DNA of 63,888 bases, counting the filler, from Choristocarpus tenellus KU-1152 (Eukaryota; Protista; Phaeophyceae): NCBI GenBank assembly GCA_964200185.2. It is 12 parts of 12 records of this genome, joined end to end, with 100 filler letters (N's around TTAATTAATTAA, not from the genome) between each part and the next. Parts side by side here need not be neighbours in the genome. Positions count along the whole stretch, not along the records: positions 48,325 to 51,449 come from CAXNAD020022141.1; 11 more parts are not named here. One strand, written 5' to 3'. Shown piece by piece: positions 211 to 51,449 of this stretch. The first letter of the stretch is position 1. The number at the start of each line of letters is the position of its first letter. A program made the translations under genes and the position numbers. The notes below the pieces were generated by a model that was not told the origin of the DNA, did no database searches, and worked only from the letters and a program-made list of their open reading frames with translations.

Positions 211-3044
211 TGTCCTGGTCCTACCTATATAATAAAAAGGCAGCCCAACCCAAAGACAAAATGACCAGATGAGCTTCTCTCCCAACACGCATTAAGACTC
301 TGCACCGAAAAACATCGACCAGTGATGTCACTAGTAATCATCCGAATCTCTGCATCATGTGCAAGTACACTACTATAATAGTTCAATGATTTCCTATGAC
401 AAAAATGTGAATGTTGACAAGAGACTAGTTTTGATTGATGGTAAAACATAAATATCCATACTCCAAAGCATGCACCTAGAATTTATGTAGTGTATTGCTA
501 CAGTGCAAGATTTTGACAGAATACATTGCAGAAGCTTTCCAGATTTTCTTGTACGTCTGTGTTGACATACGTTAGCAGCATGGTATGGAGGACCCCTAAG
601 TGCTGAGTATTTTGGAAGGTATTTACTGCCTCCAATCAAACAGAAGTGTTGCGGAGCACAAATTGTGTCTCGGCTGCTGCAAAAAAACAAGACAGTGTTC
701 AGTCTTGAACAGGTCTCAGGCACCCCTTACCAAACATGTTGCATATAATTTCAACACAATTGAAGAGATCAAAGTGTGTGTATGTTTACCATAGGTCTCT
801 GGCATCACTATGATAATAGTGCATGAAAGAGTGAATGGCAAGAAGTCCAGATATGTTCTTCGCATCGAACTGTATGCATATCAACCAAACTTCTTTAGAA
901 TAGAGTAGTGATGGAGGATATGGGGAAGCAGGTTAGGTGATGCTTTTGATCCGCTCCGGAAGATATCCACCAAGAAAAAAAACAGATCACCTCACACACA
1001 CCCTACTACACGACCAAAACAGAGTATCGCAGGAACTAGAAAGTACGATTAAGTACTCAATATAATAGCATAGAATAGTAAAATCTAGTACGTATCGAAG
1101 ATCATGAGAAAAGTTCAGCCTTCAATAAAAATGTTTACATGCTTAATTTTTCCTGATTCTTCCATAAATAGCTCAGAAAACTTGATCGTGTGGGTTGCAC
1201 AGTTGCATTACAGTACACAAGCATTAATACACTCACCCTGAGAGTGAAAATAGGGCTGCAACCTCCCTGGGTCCCTCGAGAGCCAATTCCTCGACTGTCT
1301 TGATGGTGTCTAGCTTACTCTGGCGCCTCCGACTCAAATCGTTGTCCGCGCGATCCGCCAAAATCATAGCCTAAACGTTGGTTCAAGTTGAGATATTTAT
1401 CTGGGCAACTCTCTTGGTACAAGGAGGAATCAAGCACTTGACTAAACCGGTAATTTCACATTGAGGAATCCTAAGGCGGTAGGTCAAAATACGACAATCT
1501 AGCAAAGCACTTGGGATATTTTTCTACAGATAGTTAGCACACCACTAATGTAGATCAGTAATGTCTTTGCTAACAGTGCGTAAATATACATAAAAAAATG
1601 AACATTTCATTTGAGAGCATCTCTTCTCATTCAATATAGAAAATTTATGTCAGTCCCTGTAGCCCTCGATCACCTCTTGAACCCATTATCCTCGCACCTG
1701 ACAACCTGGGGTATTGATCCCAGCCAAGTATCGGGGAGCAAAATGTGCAAGGCATCTCCCAGGGGCATATAATACGAACCCACCTCCATCACGACTCCTT
1801 AGCAGTGACTGCCATTCATGAGTGCCTGAGAGAATGCAATGGAGACAAGGGAGGGGAGTTCGGGCCAATATCTATGCAATGTCTGAAATGAAAAGGAAGA
1901 ATAGCTTCAGAATGGGGACGTGGATCAGAAATACACTTGGCAAGCCAGGGCGACCATGCCAGCAGAGGAATTCAATGGTGAAAGAGGTGAGGTGGGAACA
2001 GTATGGTTAGATCATGGTTGGAACACATTGTGTGGTTAGTCGTTGACAGAGCATCTGAAACTCAGTATCAGTGTAGTGGAAAATATTAATGGATAGGTAC
2101 TACAGTATATATTGAAGCAACGGTGTCCAAATACCAGAACAGCACAGCTCCTCTAGCTAGGGTTCCAATCCTGCCTCAAAGCGTTAGGAGGATAGCCCTC
2201 CCTTCAAATCACTATCACATCGCAGGAAAAATATGTGTAGTACCTACACCCCTAAGTCAGCTAATGATCATGTGAAGCGGAAAACACACCATACTTGTGG
2301 AAGTGTGTGCTTGCAGGAGCACATAATACACAGCAGTAGCCTACAGTAGCAGCCTATTATCTGCTTGGTGTGTCTAATGTTTGCAGGGGGCTTCTGCATT
2401 GGATGAACAACAACAAAACTGAAATATACACTATATGAGGCTGATGGTATTACAATCATATTGCACTCCAACAAAGCAGATGCCATGATTAATAATACTT
2501 AATTTGGGTCGAAAAATACTCACTGCAGCATCCGATTGGCATTAACAGGAGCATTACAACTTGAACCATATCACAGCGTTTTAACTCTAGCTCCAGAGTC
2601 AGAGTAAACAAGAGGTACAAAGGTTTTGGTCATTTTGCATCTCAAGTCTGCCCTTCAATCTTTTTCAATTCACCCAAGTTTCTATGAATGAGGCTCTAAG
2701 CTTGACTTGAGACCAATCATTTCTCTAATGTTTGAAACTTTTCTGACACAATTCACACAATACCCTTTGATACAGTGATAAGCCTTAAGGCACCTTTACT
2801 GAATATCATGAAAAAAATTTCCATCTACGTATGTATCCATAAACATTGCACAGGCAGGTTTTGAGCAAATCGGCGCCAGGAATCAAATGATGTTTCTCAA
2901 AGTCACATTGTAGGGACTTCAGTATGTTGTATGGAGGGTATTCATACTGGAATCCTATGTCATAGTGCATTGGTGGCATCCGAAGATGTACCAGGGAGAA
3001 CTGAACCGAATGAAAGGTTTAGGGGGATCAAACCACACATCTGA

Positions 3045-3310
3045 TCCAATGCATTTTAGAGGGTAGGGCCGAGTCTGTTTGGGGTCATAAATCCAATGTT
3101 GTGGTTTTGATGAATTTTGACTATCGTGTTTCAAGCATCAATATCCTTGCTTTGGACACGTCATTCATAGTTGTGTACGTTTTACCTACTCCGAAATGTT
3201 TCAGGGCAGGTACCTGTCTTCACAGAAAACCGAAAATAGGGCATAAAAAACCCATGGGAAGCCAAGCCCCTAGCGAAGAAATAGGGTAAATACCTATCCT
3301 CTGAAATACC
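3045..3310. mobile_element. MITE family A, old diverged copy (ends approximate)
   Basis: TTAGAGGGTAGGGCC...AATCCAATGTTG...TTTTACCTACTCCGAAATG...CCCATGGGAAGCCAAGCCCC is colinear with other copies; TIRs eroded. Confidence 0.75.
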
Positions 3311-5200
3311 AGGAACCAAGCAAGGCATAAAATTGTAGGTTGTAGAGGTCAAGATTTGGGCTTGATATTGCGCTCCACATTTAGGATGGTCAAAATTAGT
3401 GGTTAGTGTGTGTCTTCCCTCCCCTTAATCCATAGAATTTATTTTAGTGAATCACCACAAGAGGAGGTGCCATGGAAGGAGAAGAAGATATTTTTTTCGG
3501 AGGATGCTACAAACTGCACAATGTTGACATATGCCGCCTGCGAGTTGTTTTTCAATCATACCTCTGTTCAGCATCAGGTTGAACAGTTTGCTGGGATGTC
3601 TTTATACCGCAACAGGAAGATTCTCCTTATGACTTTGCAGCGGGTGGTGTAGAACAAGTCCGATTTCGTGGATAATCTAAAGTTATGGTTAGGTCATTTT
3701 TATTGTAACCTCACAATGAATTTTGTAAGAAAACTCCCACAAAAAGGGATGCAATCTGATACATCTTGTACATTCATAAGTTGCCTCGCAAATTGTTCAA
3801 GCTGATGCTGAAGAGTATTAGGGAGATGCGAAATCTAAACAGGCTACCCTCTAAGATGGTATACTTCACTCCGTTTCCTGATTGATATCCTACAACACAG
3901 CAGTCGCTAGGATCTGTACTATATAGGCTACGTATTCTATAGGATCTTATGTCTTTAGTCACTAGTACTATATAACAGAAGTATTGGCTGAGTGAAGCAA
4001 GTGTCCAGAACTTGTTTCCGTGTACTTAGAATAGCAGGTTCAAGTCTCGATGGATTGAGTTCATATTTCTGTTTAATATAAGTGGCCGACGTAGTGTATC
4101 TGACACAGTTGATGGCTGACGTAGTGTAATGTTCACCACCAGGAGGTGAGACGGATAGCACGGAACGTAGTAACTGTCACAAGCATATTTCCGACGTGTT
4201 TGCTGACGTGTGCGCATTAGATAACAAGGGAGAGCACCCCCCCCAACCTCGAGGGTAGTGCTCACTCTATTAATAAATACATCCATACAACATATTGAAA
4301 AGGCTCTATTGGAATAGCTCTCTTTTGCATAGGATCAAGAACAGTTTTCGGCCATTTTACAAGTGAAATCAAGGACTGGAGTAATAATATTCTCCGAGCA
4401 GTGACACAAACTCTCTATTGCCTCACAGGTGTTCATAGGAGCATTAATTATATTTCAAATGGTTTATATGTAGTGAAACATGCCTGATGGAGACTATATC
4501 TTTGGTTGAAAGGTGGATGTAACCCAAATATGTATCCAGCTGATATTTTGTTGACGACCTTCCATCAATACAGGTGAAATGACATTCAAGATCCACATCC
4601 TGATTATTCACCAAAAAAAATAAATTAGATTCATAATGATGACCTGAACTACAACTTAAGTGCAGCAGTATAATTGTTACTTGCTGAAAGCATCCTATCT
4701 TAAAAATGTGTTGTTTGTACTCAATGATATACCGAAGGACTGTTACCAAACTCCATACAAGGTAAGGAAGATTTGAGCACATAGCCAACTGACCACATTC
4801 TGACTATTTTGTCACTTCGAAAGAGTCAACACAGATACTGCATTGTGGAAGTCCCTTGCCTATTTTAGTACAAAAAGATTTCAAACTAATCTGCGGCGAA
4901 AGATTGTCTCTTGCAAAATATATATTCCATGGGCAAGTTCCTCAAGGAAAAATATGACCATCAATAACCTAGGGGCATTCCTTCAAAGTTTATTGAACTC
5001 TGCATGTTAGGTCTTCATAATTGAGAAGGACCTTTGGTCATCTGTGTGAAGTCTCTCTTGTGGTAAGTTTATTATGGACCACCTTATATTTAGCAAATAT
5101 TTTGCACTAAGAAGTCCCACATCCAAGGTATATATGGTTTCATTATCACTTTCCTAGTCCGATAGAAGCATACTATTTCTCACTATGAGAGAAGTAATTT

Positions 5201-5539
5201 CCATGAACTACTTTTCCCTTAGAGATACCTATTGAAAGTCTCCAATCCGCCGCACAACCTTCAACTTCATTATACCTCCCCAAGAGAACACGGATTTCTC
5301 ATCTGGAAGAAACTAATTTAACCTGTACTGGTTAGATCTAGCCAACTGAGTTCTGATCATGAATGTACCCTGACCCTCCATGAACTACTTTTCTCTTAGA
5401 GATGCCTATTGAATTTCCCCGATCGACCACATAACCTTCAACTTCATTACACCTCCCCAAGAGGGAATGGATTCCCCATCTGAAAGGAACCAATTTAACG
5501 TGTACTGGTTGAATCAAGCCAACTGAGTTCTGATCATGA
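5201..5539. repeat. Diverged tandem duplication, period 177 bp
   Basis: CCATGAACTACTTTTC...GCCAACTGAGTTCTGATCATGA at 5201-5360 and 5378-5539. Confidence 0.85.
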
Positions 5540-7403
5540 CTAATCTGACCTACCACTAGGCCCCACCACCTCTCACTAACTGCAGGTTCTTCCTGTCACC
5601 CTTTTGTTTCCCTCCACCTGTGCATCTTCACAAAACATCTTGGCAATCCTCTTACCAGGAAAATGACTGTCTCCAAACACGCCTGCCCATAATGAAACAT
5701 TCACTTTGCCCTTCCCAGAGCCTACATCCTTGCGCAGAGTTTCCACAGCAGAGGGGCAATCCTTTCCTCCTCTCCCTCCTCCATTACCACCTGCCTCCCC
5801 TGTGCCTATCCCCTCCTTTCCTTTCAGCTTAGCTGCCCCTGACACCAGTCCTACCCCATGATCCTCCAAGAACGGGTCAGTGATGTGAGCCATCTTGGAA
5901 TTTTTTACTTCAAATTTGAACGTCACTGCAGTGCGGATTCTGGTAGAACAAGAACAGCAAGATGGTAAATTTTCCAGGATTGGGGTTGGAACAGTTGTTG
6001 GAGCGCGTATGAAGAGTTGTCTACAGGGGTGGGTGGAGGTGGAGGTGGGGGTAACGATCGGAATCGCTTTTTAGGTGTTGAAGAAAAGAGATGAGAAAAA
6101 AGGGTGAAGGAGACATGAAAGAGAGAATATGTGGGGAGCAATGGGAGGTAGGAGGACTGTTTCCAGTGAGGGGGTGGTGGAAATGCACTTCAAGCAACGT
6201 TTTTCAACAATGTTGTATCCTGTATGTTGCATTGAGCCAACAGCATGCATGCCTTGCAATATCCCCCATTGGACCACTATCATCTTAGCAACATCCATAG
6301 GTGCAGAGGGTAAGGTTTAAATCCTGCCTAACAGAGAGCATTATGGAGTGGGGGAGTAGTATGTAGTGACTACAGAAGCAAGTTTCCTTCACCTTTGTCA
6401 GCATTGACTGATGATCGTGCGCTATGGTGTCATAGGTGCAACTAAGTGGAGATATAGAGTGCAAGGTCATAGTTCCAAAGGGTAAATATATTGGAACTTG
6501 AAAAATGATTGTGCTTCCCATGTTGCCCAAAACATAACAATAGTAAGTGAGGAATTATGACATTGGAACAGGGTAGTGGATCAAGTAATGCATCCAATTG
6601 CCTCAATGTGAATACAATGTTACCATACTATAAATGAGGTTTTCATGCAGTGTCTTTACATTCTCTACCTTATACTTTCTCATTTCTCTAGCATTTTGTC
6701 AGTATGTGTGAAAGCTATACTTAGACAGTACATGATACTGTACTTCATAGAACATGCACCATGGATGAAATCATATCCATGAACAAATAACATTTAATAT
6801 CCCCACATCTCTAGTATCCAGTCCCCTTATCCTGCTTCAAAACATCCCTGCTCTAATAGTAGAAGAACACCTGTGGTTGAGGAGATGGAGACTAAAGTCC
6901 CTTGATAAGGCAGGTAATCCCTCAAAAACTGAGCATGCCTCCACGGGAAGTTCGGAAAGATTGTCGTCCAAAAGAAGAACCAACGATGTTCCAACAGTTC
7001 TGCATCGGTCCAGGAAGGGTCCCAGCCCCTGATGCACACAGGTGGGGTTTCAGTACCTCCATCCCACTTTGGTGGTAGAGAACATTTGGTAACAGAATGA
7101 ATGCTATATATGGACATGGTGTTCTGGACAACTATATCACCTAGTCAGAATATTTTTCAAGTACAAAGACTGTGTCACATAGTTGTATCATCTGTCCTTG
7201 CAGGGATATGGTGTTGCACACAGGTTCATAGCCCCAGTCCCCCCTTCTCTCCACACACAAGCAGTGTACCTACACACATGCACAGCTAAATGCATGATCA
7301 TTACATCATTACTTACCCCAGAGGTCCCCTGTCCCCACAGTGGAGACAGTAGTTCCTCTGTTCCCCTTCTTAGGGTCTCAAACTCTTGGTCACAAATTCT
7401 CGC

Positions 7404-7669: not shown

Positions 7670-8137
7670 TCATTTTAACCCGTTTTGAAGTCGTTACCTT
7701 CAAAATTGCTCGGAGATAACCCCCCGCGTTTTTGTCATTATTTCGTCGAGATATAGCTCCCATTCCCCGAAGCCTGGACATTCGTGGATACAACCTTCGA
7801 AAGGTCTTGCCATTCCCTTTCATTTGATATATGTATATTGTTGTATATCTGTTGTGGCGTTCCAGTTAAAAATCTACGGTTGCTGCAGAGGGCGAAACTA
7901 CTGGTACCACCTTAGTAGGAGTAACAGAATTGTTAGGGGTTAGAGATAAGGTAGAGTTAGGACTAATATGAGCTGGGGTACTTCGATAAAGTTCGGTATG
8001 TGCGTGCCTAATAACCTCCACCCCATAAGGCCATGTCTTATTCGTAGTATCTACTTATGCTATATTTGTGGAGGTGTACTTGTGAAAACTGAGCGTGACA
8101 ATTCCAAGACCACAGCACGAAAAATTACAAAAGAAGT

Positions 8138-8220
8138 ACCAAATCACCAAAAAAATCACGACATGAAAAAAGGGTCTCAAATGGACAGCTGCCACCCCCC
8201 CCCCCGAGATACTTTGAGCC
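8138..8220. mobile_element. MITE family B, half copy
   Basis: ACCAAATCACC...CAAATGGACAGCTGCCA-polyC-GAGATACTTTGAGCC. Confidence 0.8.
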
Positions 8221-9610
8221 AAAACTGAAAAAAAGGAAGAATTTAGTTGACAAGAAGTTAGTAGCTTACAGGGATGGTCAAGAAAGTTGAAGATGAAAAA
8301 CAAAAGTAAAGTGTATAGGAGACGAACTGGTGGATGGGCGTTCAAGACGATCTTGAGAAACTAGGGATCAGATTTGAGGGATGTTGTACAAAGGGAACAA
8401 ACCAACAGAGGCGACTGACAGCACAAAGAATTTCATGGATTAGTAGCATGCCATCCAAAATGTGGTAGCTGGCGTGTTATATGCTAAAACAGCAGCGAAG
8501 GAACCAAAGGAGATTTTGGCACATGCATCATCACCTCTCCATCCTAAAAGGAGTTGTTCTCATTGTGTCTCTCTTGTTGAGTTGATAGAAGTTCTTCTTG
8601 CGTTCCTGCTATCAAATCTTGTTTTTCTCTGGCGTTGCGTATTGTTTTTCTCAGACTATTTTCGACCAAGGGTTTGGCACTTTCAGGCTGATGTTAATAG
8701 AAATTACTCTATATATTTTTTACTTATTGAGCTCATGCGCTCAACCAAATCAATTGATAGGAGGCAGGATTGCATTTTAAGGATCTCAACAAAGGGCATA
8801 AATACTCCTTTTTGTACAACTCCAGGAATAGCATTTGCTTAATTGTGGTGTCACTTTGTGGAAAGAGGGAATATCAACTTTATGTGCACTATTGTACACA
8901 TACAGCAATGAAATAGTGTATTGCTCGGGGTAAGAAAGATGGCTTAGAGTGCTAAAGGGTCCAATCTTGCCTACTTCTCAATTGTTTTTGGCACAAAGCA
9001 CCAAAATTTTATCAAGTAAAGTCAGACAGGAGCCTACAGATGAACCACAGCACTATATGCTCGCACAGTAGACTGGTACACCTTGCATTCAGGTCTCTGG
9101 AACCGACATGCTGGGTTAGCCTCTCTTGCCCTAACATGTCAGACAAGACTGTGCAGATGACTGTGAACTCAATGATTCGATACTGCAGGTGATGGTGTAA
9201 TGTTAAAAAACAGGCCCAACTATTGCTGTGCCACTGACTGCCACGATACACGTTTTCAGATAGATCAACTCACATATGCAAGTGTACGTATGCATGGTGG
9301 GGCGAACGTTAGGTGAAGCACCAATAAGATCTAGTATATATCTCAACAAGACCTATCTATGAAGAATGGCTCATAGGTCCAATGGGGCCTTGAATCGCTA
9401 AGAGCCAAAGTAAACGAGAGGAACCCAGATTTTGACCGTTTCGCATTATAAGGCTGTTTTTCAATCTTTTGCAAGTCATCCATATCACGATGCTGGAGTG
9501 TTTTGCTCTTGCTGGATATGTTCTTCTTTCTCTTCTATTTTCTCTTGTTTTCTTTCATTGCCCTTATGTTGGCTTTTCTCAAGTGTGTACTGCCTTTCTA
9601 CCATGGGTCT

Positions 9611-48224: not shown

Positions 48225-48774
48225 NNNNNNNNNNNNNNNNNNNNNNNNNNNNNNNNNNNNNNNNNNNNTTAATTAATTAANNNNNNNNNNNNNNNNNNNN
48301 NNNNNNNNNNNNNNNNNNNNNNNNATCGTACTTCCATTACACTCTCCCATTTTTTACGTCACCATCGTCCCCTCCTCTCCTCAACGACGTCCTCCGCCGT
48401 CTCCACTACTAGATTATCGAGAAGGACTCGTCTCTACGCGCTTACCTCACCACCTGGGAGGGTAAATACCAGGATGTACTCAACCAGGTCAACCTCCACC
48501 AGGTTCACAGCGGGCGGGGCTGTGATGGCGGCGGCGCAGAAGTTGAGATCAAGAACGGATCGGCATCAGATGGCCGTGAGAAAGAAGATGAGAGAGGGCG
48601 CGAACACCAAGGAGGGGATGGAGACGAAGGAGGGGACGAACACCAAGGAGGGGACGAAGACAAGGGAGGGAACGGACTGTCAGACAGGGAGGATACGGGC
48701 GAAGGGGGTTCTGTCGGTAATGTTCCTGGTGCAGAAGAAGAAAAAACGGCCATGGAGGGTGGAACGCGGGCGTT

Positions 48775-49382
48775 TGCTGTACTGAATGCAATCCTCCACC
48801 TACGTCTCGGTGAGTAATGTAGTTGTAACGGTGCATGTGTAGGGCGGAGTGTAATTAATAGCGTAAGATTGGTTTCCATCCAATCCCCCGAACGGATAGA
48901 TATGTTGTATCTTTTCAGCGGCGCACGCCATTGAATCCATGGTATGTTGCGGGGTCCCTCTATGTGCGGCGCTGTGGTCGCTACCTCCGTGTCTCTTTAT
49001 TTGCCACTGTCCGATTGTGTGTTAATGCATGTATACCACCGACTGTTGCATCTCACCTGCACTACTTCGTGCTGTTTTGCGCGGCCAATTTGGTGGTCCT
49101 TTGTAACCGTGGATCCCCGCGTTGCGTTGTTGCGCCCAATTAATGATCTGGAAAAATACTATACTGTCTGTTTAACGCTCTGATTCGATGACACGCGCGA
49201 CAGGTATTCATGCCCAAAGTGCTCCATCATGCATATGGGTGAGTGTGCCTACGAGGAGGTTAGAGACGATGAGAGGCACAAGGATCGATTATGTATCAAT
49301 TGCCCCATGGCACAGGAGGGCAGTGAAGGGTCTGGATCGGTGGGGAACCAAGCGGTGGGTCGGGGCAGGGGCAAGGGCAAGG
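48775..49382 (+). CDS. PHD-like Cys/His zinc finger split over two exons (to 48809; 49204-49382); 5' part unclear
   Basis: Spliced CCTECNPPPTSRYSCPKCSIMHMGECAYEEVRDDERHKDRLCINCP; GTGAGT donor and CAG acceptor in phase. In-frame TAA at 48718 upstream. Confidence 0.5.
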
Positions 49383-49850
49383 GTAAGGCTCGCGCAAGGA
49401 GCACGGGTGGGTCACCCTAGACGCTAACCCTTTTACGTTCCCCCTCAAACAGCGAAACGGCCGACATGGAGAAGTGCATGTGGGTCTCGGCGTGGTTGCA
49501 CATTATACGGACATACAAGTCGTCTCTGCGTGTTTGTTTTCGCGTTGGTTTGCACATAGGTCTTGGCTGCTTGTACATCATGTGGATTGCTCGTCCTTTG
49601 TACCTTGGATGTGTCGCTTTTTTGGAGGGTTCCATTGGCCATGGAACTTGTTATGACGTCTACCCTCCTTCCACGAGATGAATCTGATGAGTCTTGCGTT
49701 GTGGAGGGTACGGCCTGACATTTTGGAGATGCTGTGGAAATACTGTCAGGAACTCACTTAATGAAAAGATTGCCTGCACCGTAGCTTACTACGCCATCCT
49801 TCTTGTCGTGCTGTCTGTCTACTGTGTTGTGTGTCATGGTGTCCAAGCAG

Positions 49851-51379
49851 GAGTGAGAACACTGCACTACACGACCTTCGCCCTCTCAACCCTACGGTAT
49901 CCTTAGACAAACTTGTTGATTTGGCCTTCTGCAACGCGCCAAAGCTCGCCATAGTGTCCATTGCCGCCGAGCCAAGACTCCTCAACGATGAAGAGGCGAC
50001 CAACACACACCTGCGCGAGGTGCTTCAGTGCTTGCGGCCTAAGATGCATCCTCAGGGCACCATCGCGCTCATTGTGCCCCACCCGTGGAAGGTGCAATTA
50101 CACCGCCTAGTAGGTGAGTTGCAGAGTTCACAAGTGCTGGAATATGGGGTATATTGCGGGAGACTGATGCGATCCGCCATGGCCATTATCATTCCGTCTG
50201 TGTGCCGATCGAATATTGTGCGACCGTTCAGGAGATGCGGATTAGGTCGTGTGTATTCCTTTTTCAGTTTCCCCATGTTGTTTCATGTCCTTTGTACCTT
50301 CTACTTCCTTTTGTCTCGCTTGCTCTTTCCCTCGGCAACTATGTATTTCTTTGTTTCATTGTCCACGAATCGCATGCTGGTGTTACTCGTCTTCACTACA
50401 TTGTTTTTGCCATATTTACTTCTGTTATTACTTAATTTCCTATTGTTTGCAATTTTTGCATTGGTTATTTGCCTTACGTTCCACACTCATAGTACTATTA
50501 TAATGTTTGTGGTATGAGATTTCATGAATCCCTACGATAACTACTTGTGTGATGTCACTGTCAAGTTTGACACATGCCGGACCCACGTGCTCGCTCCCGC
50601 CTTCTATTCATTCAGAGGCTCTTACTGCGTTGAAGGTAGGCTTGGTTGTGGAGGATCATCCCCTAACCCTAATATACAAGACGAGGGGGGGGGGGCGCCC
50701 TCAATTAGGCACAGATAACCATCTCAGATGTTGTCAGGACGTGATTCTTCTCGCGTACAACGATGGGACAACGTCCACATGCAGTAAGCGAGTCACCGTC
50801 GACGACATCTTCGGCCACGGGCGTGATGCATCTCCTCCGGTACTCAAAACCACGTTGGACGTCGAATATGAAGGTTCTGCAACGGACATCCCCATGAGGG
50901 CCCTCCACTTCCTCGTTAACAGGTTCGTTAATAACGTCACACACATCCTTCTTCACAGAAGCAGCGATTTTTTTTTGTATAGGTGTAGGACATCGTTAAA
51001 CAGTAACAGAACGAGCTGGGTGACGGTTCAGGGGCGTCAATCCATCCCACGAGTTTGTTTCCCGAATCGGTACGTTAAGCGTCAAAACGCACCAAGAGTG
51101 TGTTGCCCTGTATCGGAACGTTACTCATACATTGCAACATGATGAATCCGTGCGCAATACAATATACTACAGAGGGATAATTAACGAACTGCCCTCCTAT
51201 GATAGGTACACGAATGCTGGGGATACCGTCGTCTCCTACAGCGCAGAGAGGCACAATGTGGTGGAGGCGGCCCTTGAACTGAGCAGGAGGGTGGAGGTGT
51301 TCATGTCCAACGCGGCGTCAAAGGACGAAGGGAAAGAGAAGGTGGACACGTCCTTCGGCCAAGCCTACAAGGACAGCAA
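49851..51379 (+). CDS. Beta-class N4/N6 DNA methyltransferase-fold protein with degenerate motifs; exons 49851-50113, 50616-50922, 51206-51379; cut by a MITE
   Basis: Colinear with the N6_N4_Mtase consensus: VDLAFCNAP, LREVLQCLRPKMHPQGTIALIV, GLVVEDHPLTLIYK, QDVILLAYN, IPMRALHFLVNRYTNAGDTVVSYS, VVEAALELSRRVEVF. Intron phases 1 and 2 join in frame. Confidence 0.65.
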
Positions 51380-51449
51380 GAGTCAAAGTATCTTAGAGGG
51401 TAGAGCCACGTCCATTTGGGGGCCAAAATCCAATGTTGCGATTTTGATG
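51380..51449. mobile_element. MITE family A inserted in the MTase-like reading frame
   Basis: GAGTCAAAGTATCTTAGAGGGTAGAGCCACGTCCATTTGGGG. Confidence 0.9.

Follow-up and report, generated by a model that had tools for sequence, protein, structure and literature searches.

How a spliced gene in a brown alga came to carry the fold of a bacterial DNA methyltransferase (MTase), and what its protein does if the catalytic residues have gone, is the question raised by a locus of Choristocarpus tenellus KU-1152. The window analysed is a stretch of 63,888 nucleotides joined from parts of this genome, and the locus lies on a 3.1-kb piece of it (48325–51449, CAXNAD020022141.1). A sequence-only reading had joined three exons into a protein said to follow the PF01555 consensus, with both key motifs eroded, and proposed a domesticated pseudo-methyltransferase or, as a second option, transposon cargo. 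The answer we favour, with moderate confidence, is that the stretch holds a decayed copy of an accessory gene, carried by a giant Sola1-type DNA transposon of brown algae, whose product would bind the element without catalysis.

The three exons (49851–50113, 50616–50922 and 51206–51379) all have open frames, and removal of the GT..AG introns between them, the first in phase 1 (G/AG) and the second in phase 2 (AG/G), links them in frame. Sequencing data matching the stretch came from four public runs of one 2024 study. Contigs of run X3, which is presumably of RNA origin, omit exactly 50114–50615 and 50923–51205 (spliced joints 50113>50616 and 50922>51206) and, upstream, 48810–49203 and roughly 49480–49850; depth in this run is greater across the exons. 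These contigs derive from related copies, about 90–95% alike, so that splicing at the sites proposed earlier is demonstrated for the family and not for the window copy. Intron positions and phases are identical in eight homologous loci (L001, L002, L004, L007, L012, L013, L015 and L018). The gene is larger than the three exons and extends on both sides of them, with the following features in the piece:

48413–48809, plus strand: upstream exon encoding the end of a helical region, an acidic/Gly linker and the first CxxC pair of a PHD-like finger (donor 48809 from the spliced joint; acceptor predicted from the sequence and L002)
49204–49479, plus strand: exon with the remainder of the PHD-like Cys/His finger (CPKC..H..C..CINC) and an RG/KG-rich basic stretch (acceptor from the spliced joint 48809>49204)
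49851–50113, plus strand: exon A of the pseudo-MTase, with the motif-IV strand KLAIV and then S-I-A-A (49942–49971) replacing D/N/S-P-P-Y
50047–50088, plus strand: motif VI region of exon A, HPQGTIALIVPHPW
50114–50615, plus strand: GT-AG intron, phase 1 (X3 spliced joint, position conserved)
50616–50922, plus strand: exon B, with two core strands, a putative target-recognition region and the helix preceding motif I
50923–51205, plus strand: GT-AG intron, phase 2 (X3 joint and loose ends; P0004 spans the intron)
51206–51379, plus strand: exon C, with the motif I strand and YSAERH replacing FxGxG (51219–51254)
51285–51308, plus strand: strand 2 in exon C, without the acidic SAM-ribose residue
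51380–51449, plus strand: end of a MITE of ~258 bp in exon C, cut by the piece edge; a separate, very high-copy sequence

The acidic/Gly linker is encoded by an 18-nt tandem repeat (48586–48675). Exon C is truncated a few bases short of its normal donor: other copies run past 51380 for two codons and a GTAAG donor, in agreement with the exon ends in L001 and L012.

Sequence searches were run per exon, and fold work was done on a natural Ectocarpus homolog, P0033 (671 aa), which covers all three exons with 32–38% identity to each. Individual exons gave no meaningful E-value in Pfam, PDB sequences or PHROGs, and PF01555 was not matched in Pfam at E ≤ 10 by the exons or by full homologs. The sole SAM-fold-like match in PDB-sequence profile searches was weak (3iv6, E 0.8–1.8); with exon B alone, Atlas features were uninformative and a metagenome scan returned no locus. 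Exon B holds many family-conserved residues, judged from alignments and model; 30 relatives matched it at E ≤ 0.001, of which two are noise from repeat proteins. P0021 was discarded as ankyrin noise, and P0006, which matches as 19 short repeats, was ignored. MAFFT misplaced exon fragments, and folding used alignment A2, in which exon A is represented by Ectocarpus rows only. The AlphaFold model of P0033 is of low confidence (pLDDT 54, pTM 0.45), and its strand order is that of the beta class, with motif IV before motif I. PF01555 appeared in 25 of 30 Atlas feature matches of residues 410–671, mostly from phage (0.92, 172 shared features), and in all 10 Atlas structural rows. Foldseek with residues 413–667 retrieved CcrM (E 1.4e-6), then M1.HpyAVI, M.PvuII, M.BceJIV, M.MboIIA and M.RsrI, and VIA-align placed eleven beta-class enzymes on top (Z 12.5–8.7 over 180–217 residues, with M.MboIIA at 12.5). 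On this model, the beta-class N4/N6 amino-MTase fold claimed from the sequence is a sound assignment. The family has the fold and the motif order in common with beta-class amino-MTases (PF01555: CcrM, M.MboIIA, M.PvuII, M.RsrI and bdelloid N4CMT), with 180–200 residues aligned, and differs from them in lacking the catalytic and SAM motifs, in an identity of 9–14%, in its introns and in being transposon-borne.

That both key motifs are lost was correctly read from the sequence, as was the place of motif I, but motif IV is SIAA and not NAPK. The segment LVDLAFCNAPK falls on a helix and loop ahead of the motif-IV strand and is not conserved. In the P0033 model this strand is AKLVLL, followed by NVGA, and it aligns with KLAIV-SIAA of the window (49942–49968); motif IV is therefore SIAA at about 49957–49968, where the conserved strand KLAIVS is followed by I-A-A. 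In the eight exon-A rows this motif takes the forms SIAA, SIAT, SFAA, SFSK, NFSR or NVGA, with the first residue (S or N) kept and PPY lost in all eight. Motif I reads YSAER, CGESN, FSAER, GVETT, GADNN, FGAEH or PIETS; FxGxG and the acidic residue ending strand 2 are absent from all nine exon-C rows, across which GDTV and a later R-x-V-E are conserved. The loss is thus family-wide, spanning subfamilies with only 25–60% identity, and not decay of the window copy. Paralogues with intact motifs, suggested earlier as something to look for, were not seen in protein searches, which were limited by length and word so that a blank does not equal absence.

These substitutions bear on whether the protein could be an active, highly divergent N4/N6 methyltransferase that marks the transposon carrying it, an activity proposed for Sola1-1_Ec32 and PAG2 (PMC12477816; 10.1101/2025.02.11.637652). 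Such an enzyme would agree with that published prediction, with the retention of the whole fold and of S or N at the head of motif IV (8/8 rows), and with the purifying selection described below. We nevertheless regard it as unlikely: no copy retains PPY or FxGxG, and the substitutes vary among copies, unlike a re-tuned active site, the acidic SAM-ribose residue is missing, and PF01555 stays unmatched even at E 10, whereas PAG2 was detected with this profile (Petroll et al., 10.1101/2025.02.11.637652). From the motifs, placed on a low-confidence model, we infer that the MTase domain has ceased SAM binding and methylation.

The dN/dS check suggested by the sequence-only reading, pooled per exon, gave 0.26 between the window and L012 (p 3e-15), 0.33–0.46 among Ectocarpus copies (p 0.002–0.016) and 0.53 between the window and L002 (p 0.06), and four of the five comparisons of MTase exons gave a ratio significantly lower than 1. 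Values of 0.26–0.53 indicate that the dead-looking domain was under purifying selection, and motif loss combined with such selection suggests a pseudo-enzyme that has been conserved. Catalytic death of a whole family under such selection was not found in the literature searched and appears to be new here. A functionless, hitch-hiking relic whose fold survives by inertia would fit the many broken copies, among them that of the window and L002, and the just moderately low dN/dS of close copies. This we consider improbable, given that such divergent subfamilies have kept open frames, intron phases and core residues, that the ratio is significantly lowered in most comparisons and that spliced forms exist.

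The copy in the window is a decayed pseudogene, broken by a frameshift, a stop and a MITE insertion. A one-base deletion near 48740–48746 shifts its frame; other copies have an extra base at 48740/48742, and L002 reads through the site. An in-frame TAG follows at 49418–49420, through which L002 and the annotated homolog P0001 read, and exon B has private changes at family-conserved residues (His, Phe and Asn). The description of scaffold and frames as intact is thus true of the three exons but not of the gene copy as a whole. At 51379/51380 depth climbs about 40-fold, and hundreds of contigs with unrelated flanks begin there. The MITE has GAGT..ACTC-type inverted ends, which we take to resemble those of Sola2/Sola3, and is flanked in L002 by a 4-bp target duplication (GTTC); its portion in the piece matches L002:1267–1346 at 95%. 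Its copies at window 51380–51449, L002:1079–1336 and L002:2707–2894 make three insertions in two gene-family copies, and it is extremely abundant in organism A of the read data.

The piece as a whole is a dispersed repeat of high copy number and matched 17,265 contigs of run X1, most of them 90–95% alike (depth does not equal copy number), and E. subulatus has at least four copies that are 87–99% alike, introns included. Homologs with a named source are all brown-algal: Choristocarpus tenellus (P0001), Ectocarpus sp. CCAP 1310/34, Ectocarpus sp. 12 and Pylaiella littoralis. The remaining homologs, on contigs of assemblies or sequencing runs, share their introns. The C. tenellus contig L002 is 82–83% identical to the piece over 2.2 kb at the nucleotide level, introns included, and has the MITE in common with it. 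Contamination, which had been named as a possible source of the contig, is rejected on the strength of this match, the spliceosomal introns and the brown-algal relatives, and a brown-algal origin is upheld. CpG depletion was set aside as a sign of 5mC, the ratio in the piece (o/e 0.91) being uninformative.

Neither a transposase nor element termini lie inside the 3.1-kb piece, and the element was recognised from the homologous loci. In Ectocarpus L004, a Sola1-type transposase remnant (E 2e-6), found with the Pylaiella DUF7869 transposase as the query, lies head-to-head with the gene on the opposite strand, ~300–550 bp upstream. DNA homologous to this remnant is also head-to-head on the opposite strand in Ectocarpus L003; the 4.7 kb or so between it and the gene contain a gap and retrotransposon-like sequence. 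The DUF7869 transposase adjoining the Pylaiella copy (L014) matches that of Sola1-1_Ec32 by eye. It shares the gene's strand and lies directly upstream of exon B (L014:4269–9487), with exon A absent within 10 kb, and this locus is suggested to be a rearranged or nested element. Enclosing TIRs (AACCG..CGGTT) with a 4-bp TSD were not found at the homologous loci, which are short or gapped, and these loci have no host neighbours in common. Other sequences were seen around the copies: a piggyBac transposase fragment (L003:62–418, minus strand) and gag-like retrotransposon pieces (L003, about 1700–5050, minus strand) are nested around one Ectocarpus copy, a Ulp1/Peptidase_C48 gene, either host gene or cargo, lies downstream of another (L004:20883–24195), and in L001 a part of the element's 3' region is duplicated internally in inverted orientation (5150–5956 versus 8122–9121).

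A domesticated single-copy host gene, acting as a reader or scaffold, was the first option of the sequence-only reading, and spliceosomal introns conserved across distant brown algae would suit it. We judge it very improbable, since the sequence is a high-copy repeat linked to a transposase, is without shared host neighbours and, in the window, is disrupted three times. High copy number, transposase linkage and disruption together argue for the second option, transposon cargo.

From overlapping Ectocarpus models the family protein is estimated at about 1,100–1,200 aa. Its parts would be, in order, a ParB-like segment with an HTH, a helical region, an optional PHD-like finger, the beta-class N4/N6 MTase fold and possibly a SET-like fold. 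The putative ParB-like part comes from homologs and would lie upstream of the 3.1-kb piece; the Ectocarpus homologs start with it, an ILDGAHR motif being recognisable by eye in P0038. A PDB search with this part of the homologs gave no match, and the match of KorB (HTH) to Ectocarpus homologs was weak (E 0.03). The PHD label is a pattern match made by eye, without a Pfam match. The Cys/His finger (window 48770–48809 and 49204–49305) stands between the linker and the MTase fold, with a spacing one residue off that of a typical PHD; a similar finger occurs in L007:1632–1997 and L015:863–1234 and is absent from the Ectocarpus models. A conserved region follows exon C in homologs. Its model is poor (pLDDT 45), SET/PR domains make up at least 8 of 20 VIA rows (Z 2.1–2.7) and Foldseek gave no SET match, so that a SET-like C-terminus in homologs is suggestive only.

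Genes of this kind are already known from Ectocarpus: in the 21.5-kb element Sola1-1_Ec32, a gene on the opposite strand, tabulated as Ectocarpus-specific, encodes 1104 aa that include ParB-like and N4/N6 MTase domains (PMC12477816). Its protein, a predicted 4mC/6mA writer, was proposed to attach to the element that carries it and to modify that element (Dinatale et al. 2025, PMC12477816). Both cases have a brown-algal host, a spliced gene opposite a Sola1 transposase, the MTase part, a ParB-like part (putative in the window family) and a similar length (1104 against about 1,100–1,200 aa), and the window family, compared by description, is very probably the Sola1-1_Ec32 accessory-gene family. 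It differs in that the motifs are lost in all copies, in its extension to Choristocarpus and Pylaiella, and in the PHD-like finger and possible SET-like tail, which are unmentioned for Sola1-1_Ec32. This wider brown-algal range, the extra finger and the possible SET part were not found in the literature searched and appear to be new. In red-algal Plavaka elements, PAG2 combines PF01555 with SET and PAG3 has a ParB-like N-terminus, self-binding being proposed (10.1101/2025.02.11.637652). These too are cargo of giant DNA transposons, compared by description only; they are two genes on EnSpm/Plavaka, whereas the window family is apparently one fused protein on Sola1, is not Pfam-detectable as PAG2 is, and has no 2OG-oxygenase that we could see.

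Conserved pseudo-methyltransferases are also found in DIRS1 retrotransposons, whose inactive MTase domains were suggested to bind RNA or serve as scaffolds (PMC4738411), and in METTL14 and MTA9. DIRS1 is transposon-borne as well (PMC4738411); these proteins belong to PCIF1-like or MT-A70 lineages, however, and to a retroelement or host complex, not to a DNA transposon. The DIRS1 precedent raises the alternative that the dead MTase binds element RNA or scaffolds host proteins. The RG-rich stretch in exon 49204–49479 would suit such a role, and the structures closest to P0033 after the beta-class enzymes are the METTL3/14 and MTA1/9 folds. Their Z of 6–8 compares with 10–12.5 for the DNA enzymes, which are the closest folds, and the host element, a DNA transposon, moves by cut and paste without passing through RNA; we think this role quite unlikely.

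The working parts being lost in every relative read, the protein probably binds DNA rather than marks it, and on sequence, model and analogy we lean towards a non-catalytic accessory factor of Sola1 elements. Beta-class enzymes act as dimers on DNA, and the pseudo-MTase may have been kept as a DNA-binding or dimerising module. Acting jointly with the ParB part, it would bind DNA of the very element that encodes it, and the bound protein might shield the element from host silencing or aid transposition. Such a factor would be VANC-like while working without writing a mark, the anti-silencing role being drawn by analogy only. VANC of VANDAL, an accessory protein thought to bind its own element, is a working analogy with no homology expected; it removes 5mC, which most brown algae lack. 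A bolder version, possible but doubtful, is a counter-silencing protein in which the ParB module loads and spreads while the dead MTase and a dead SET serve as DNA and histone readers or decoys. The protein would on that same tentative reading be an ancient, non-catalytic and independently evolved counterpart of VANC on brown-algal Sola1 transposons.

The silencing of transposons in brown algae is for the most part not understood, Ectocarpus being without 5mC and the usual repressive histone marks, H3K9me and H3K27me3 (PMC12477816). Choristocarpus belongs to the Discosporangiales, of which D. mesarthrocarpum retains DNMT1 (10.1101/2024.02.19.579948), so that a test of the protein against 5mC silencing may be feasible in this lineage. 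The pseudogene in the window matters only as a pointer to its family. If the domain is dead family-wide and yet conserved, the published idea of self-methylation needs revising, to the extent that the window family is that of Sola1-1_Ec32, with which it is matched by description. If the reading favoured here is true, one more phage or bacterial DNA methylase fold would have been reused as a eukaryotic pseudo-enzyme, and the protein would offer a way to identify the silencing factors of the host against which the element works.
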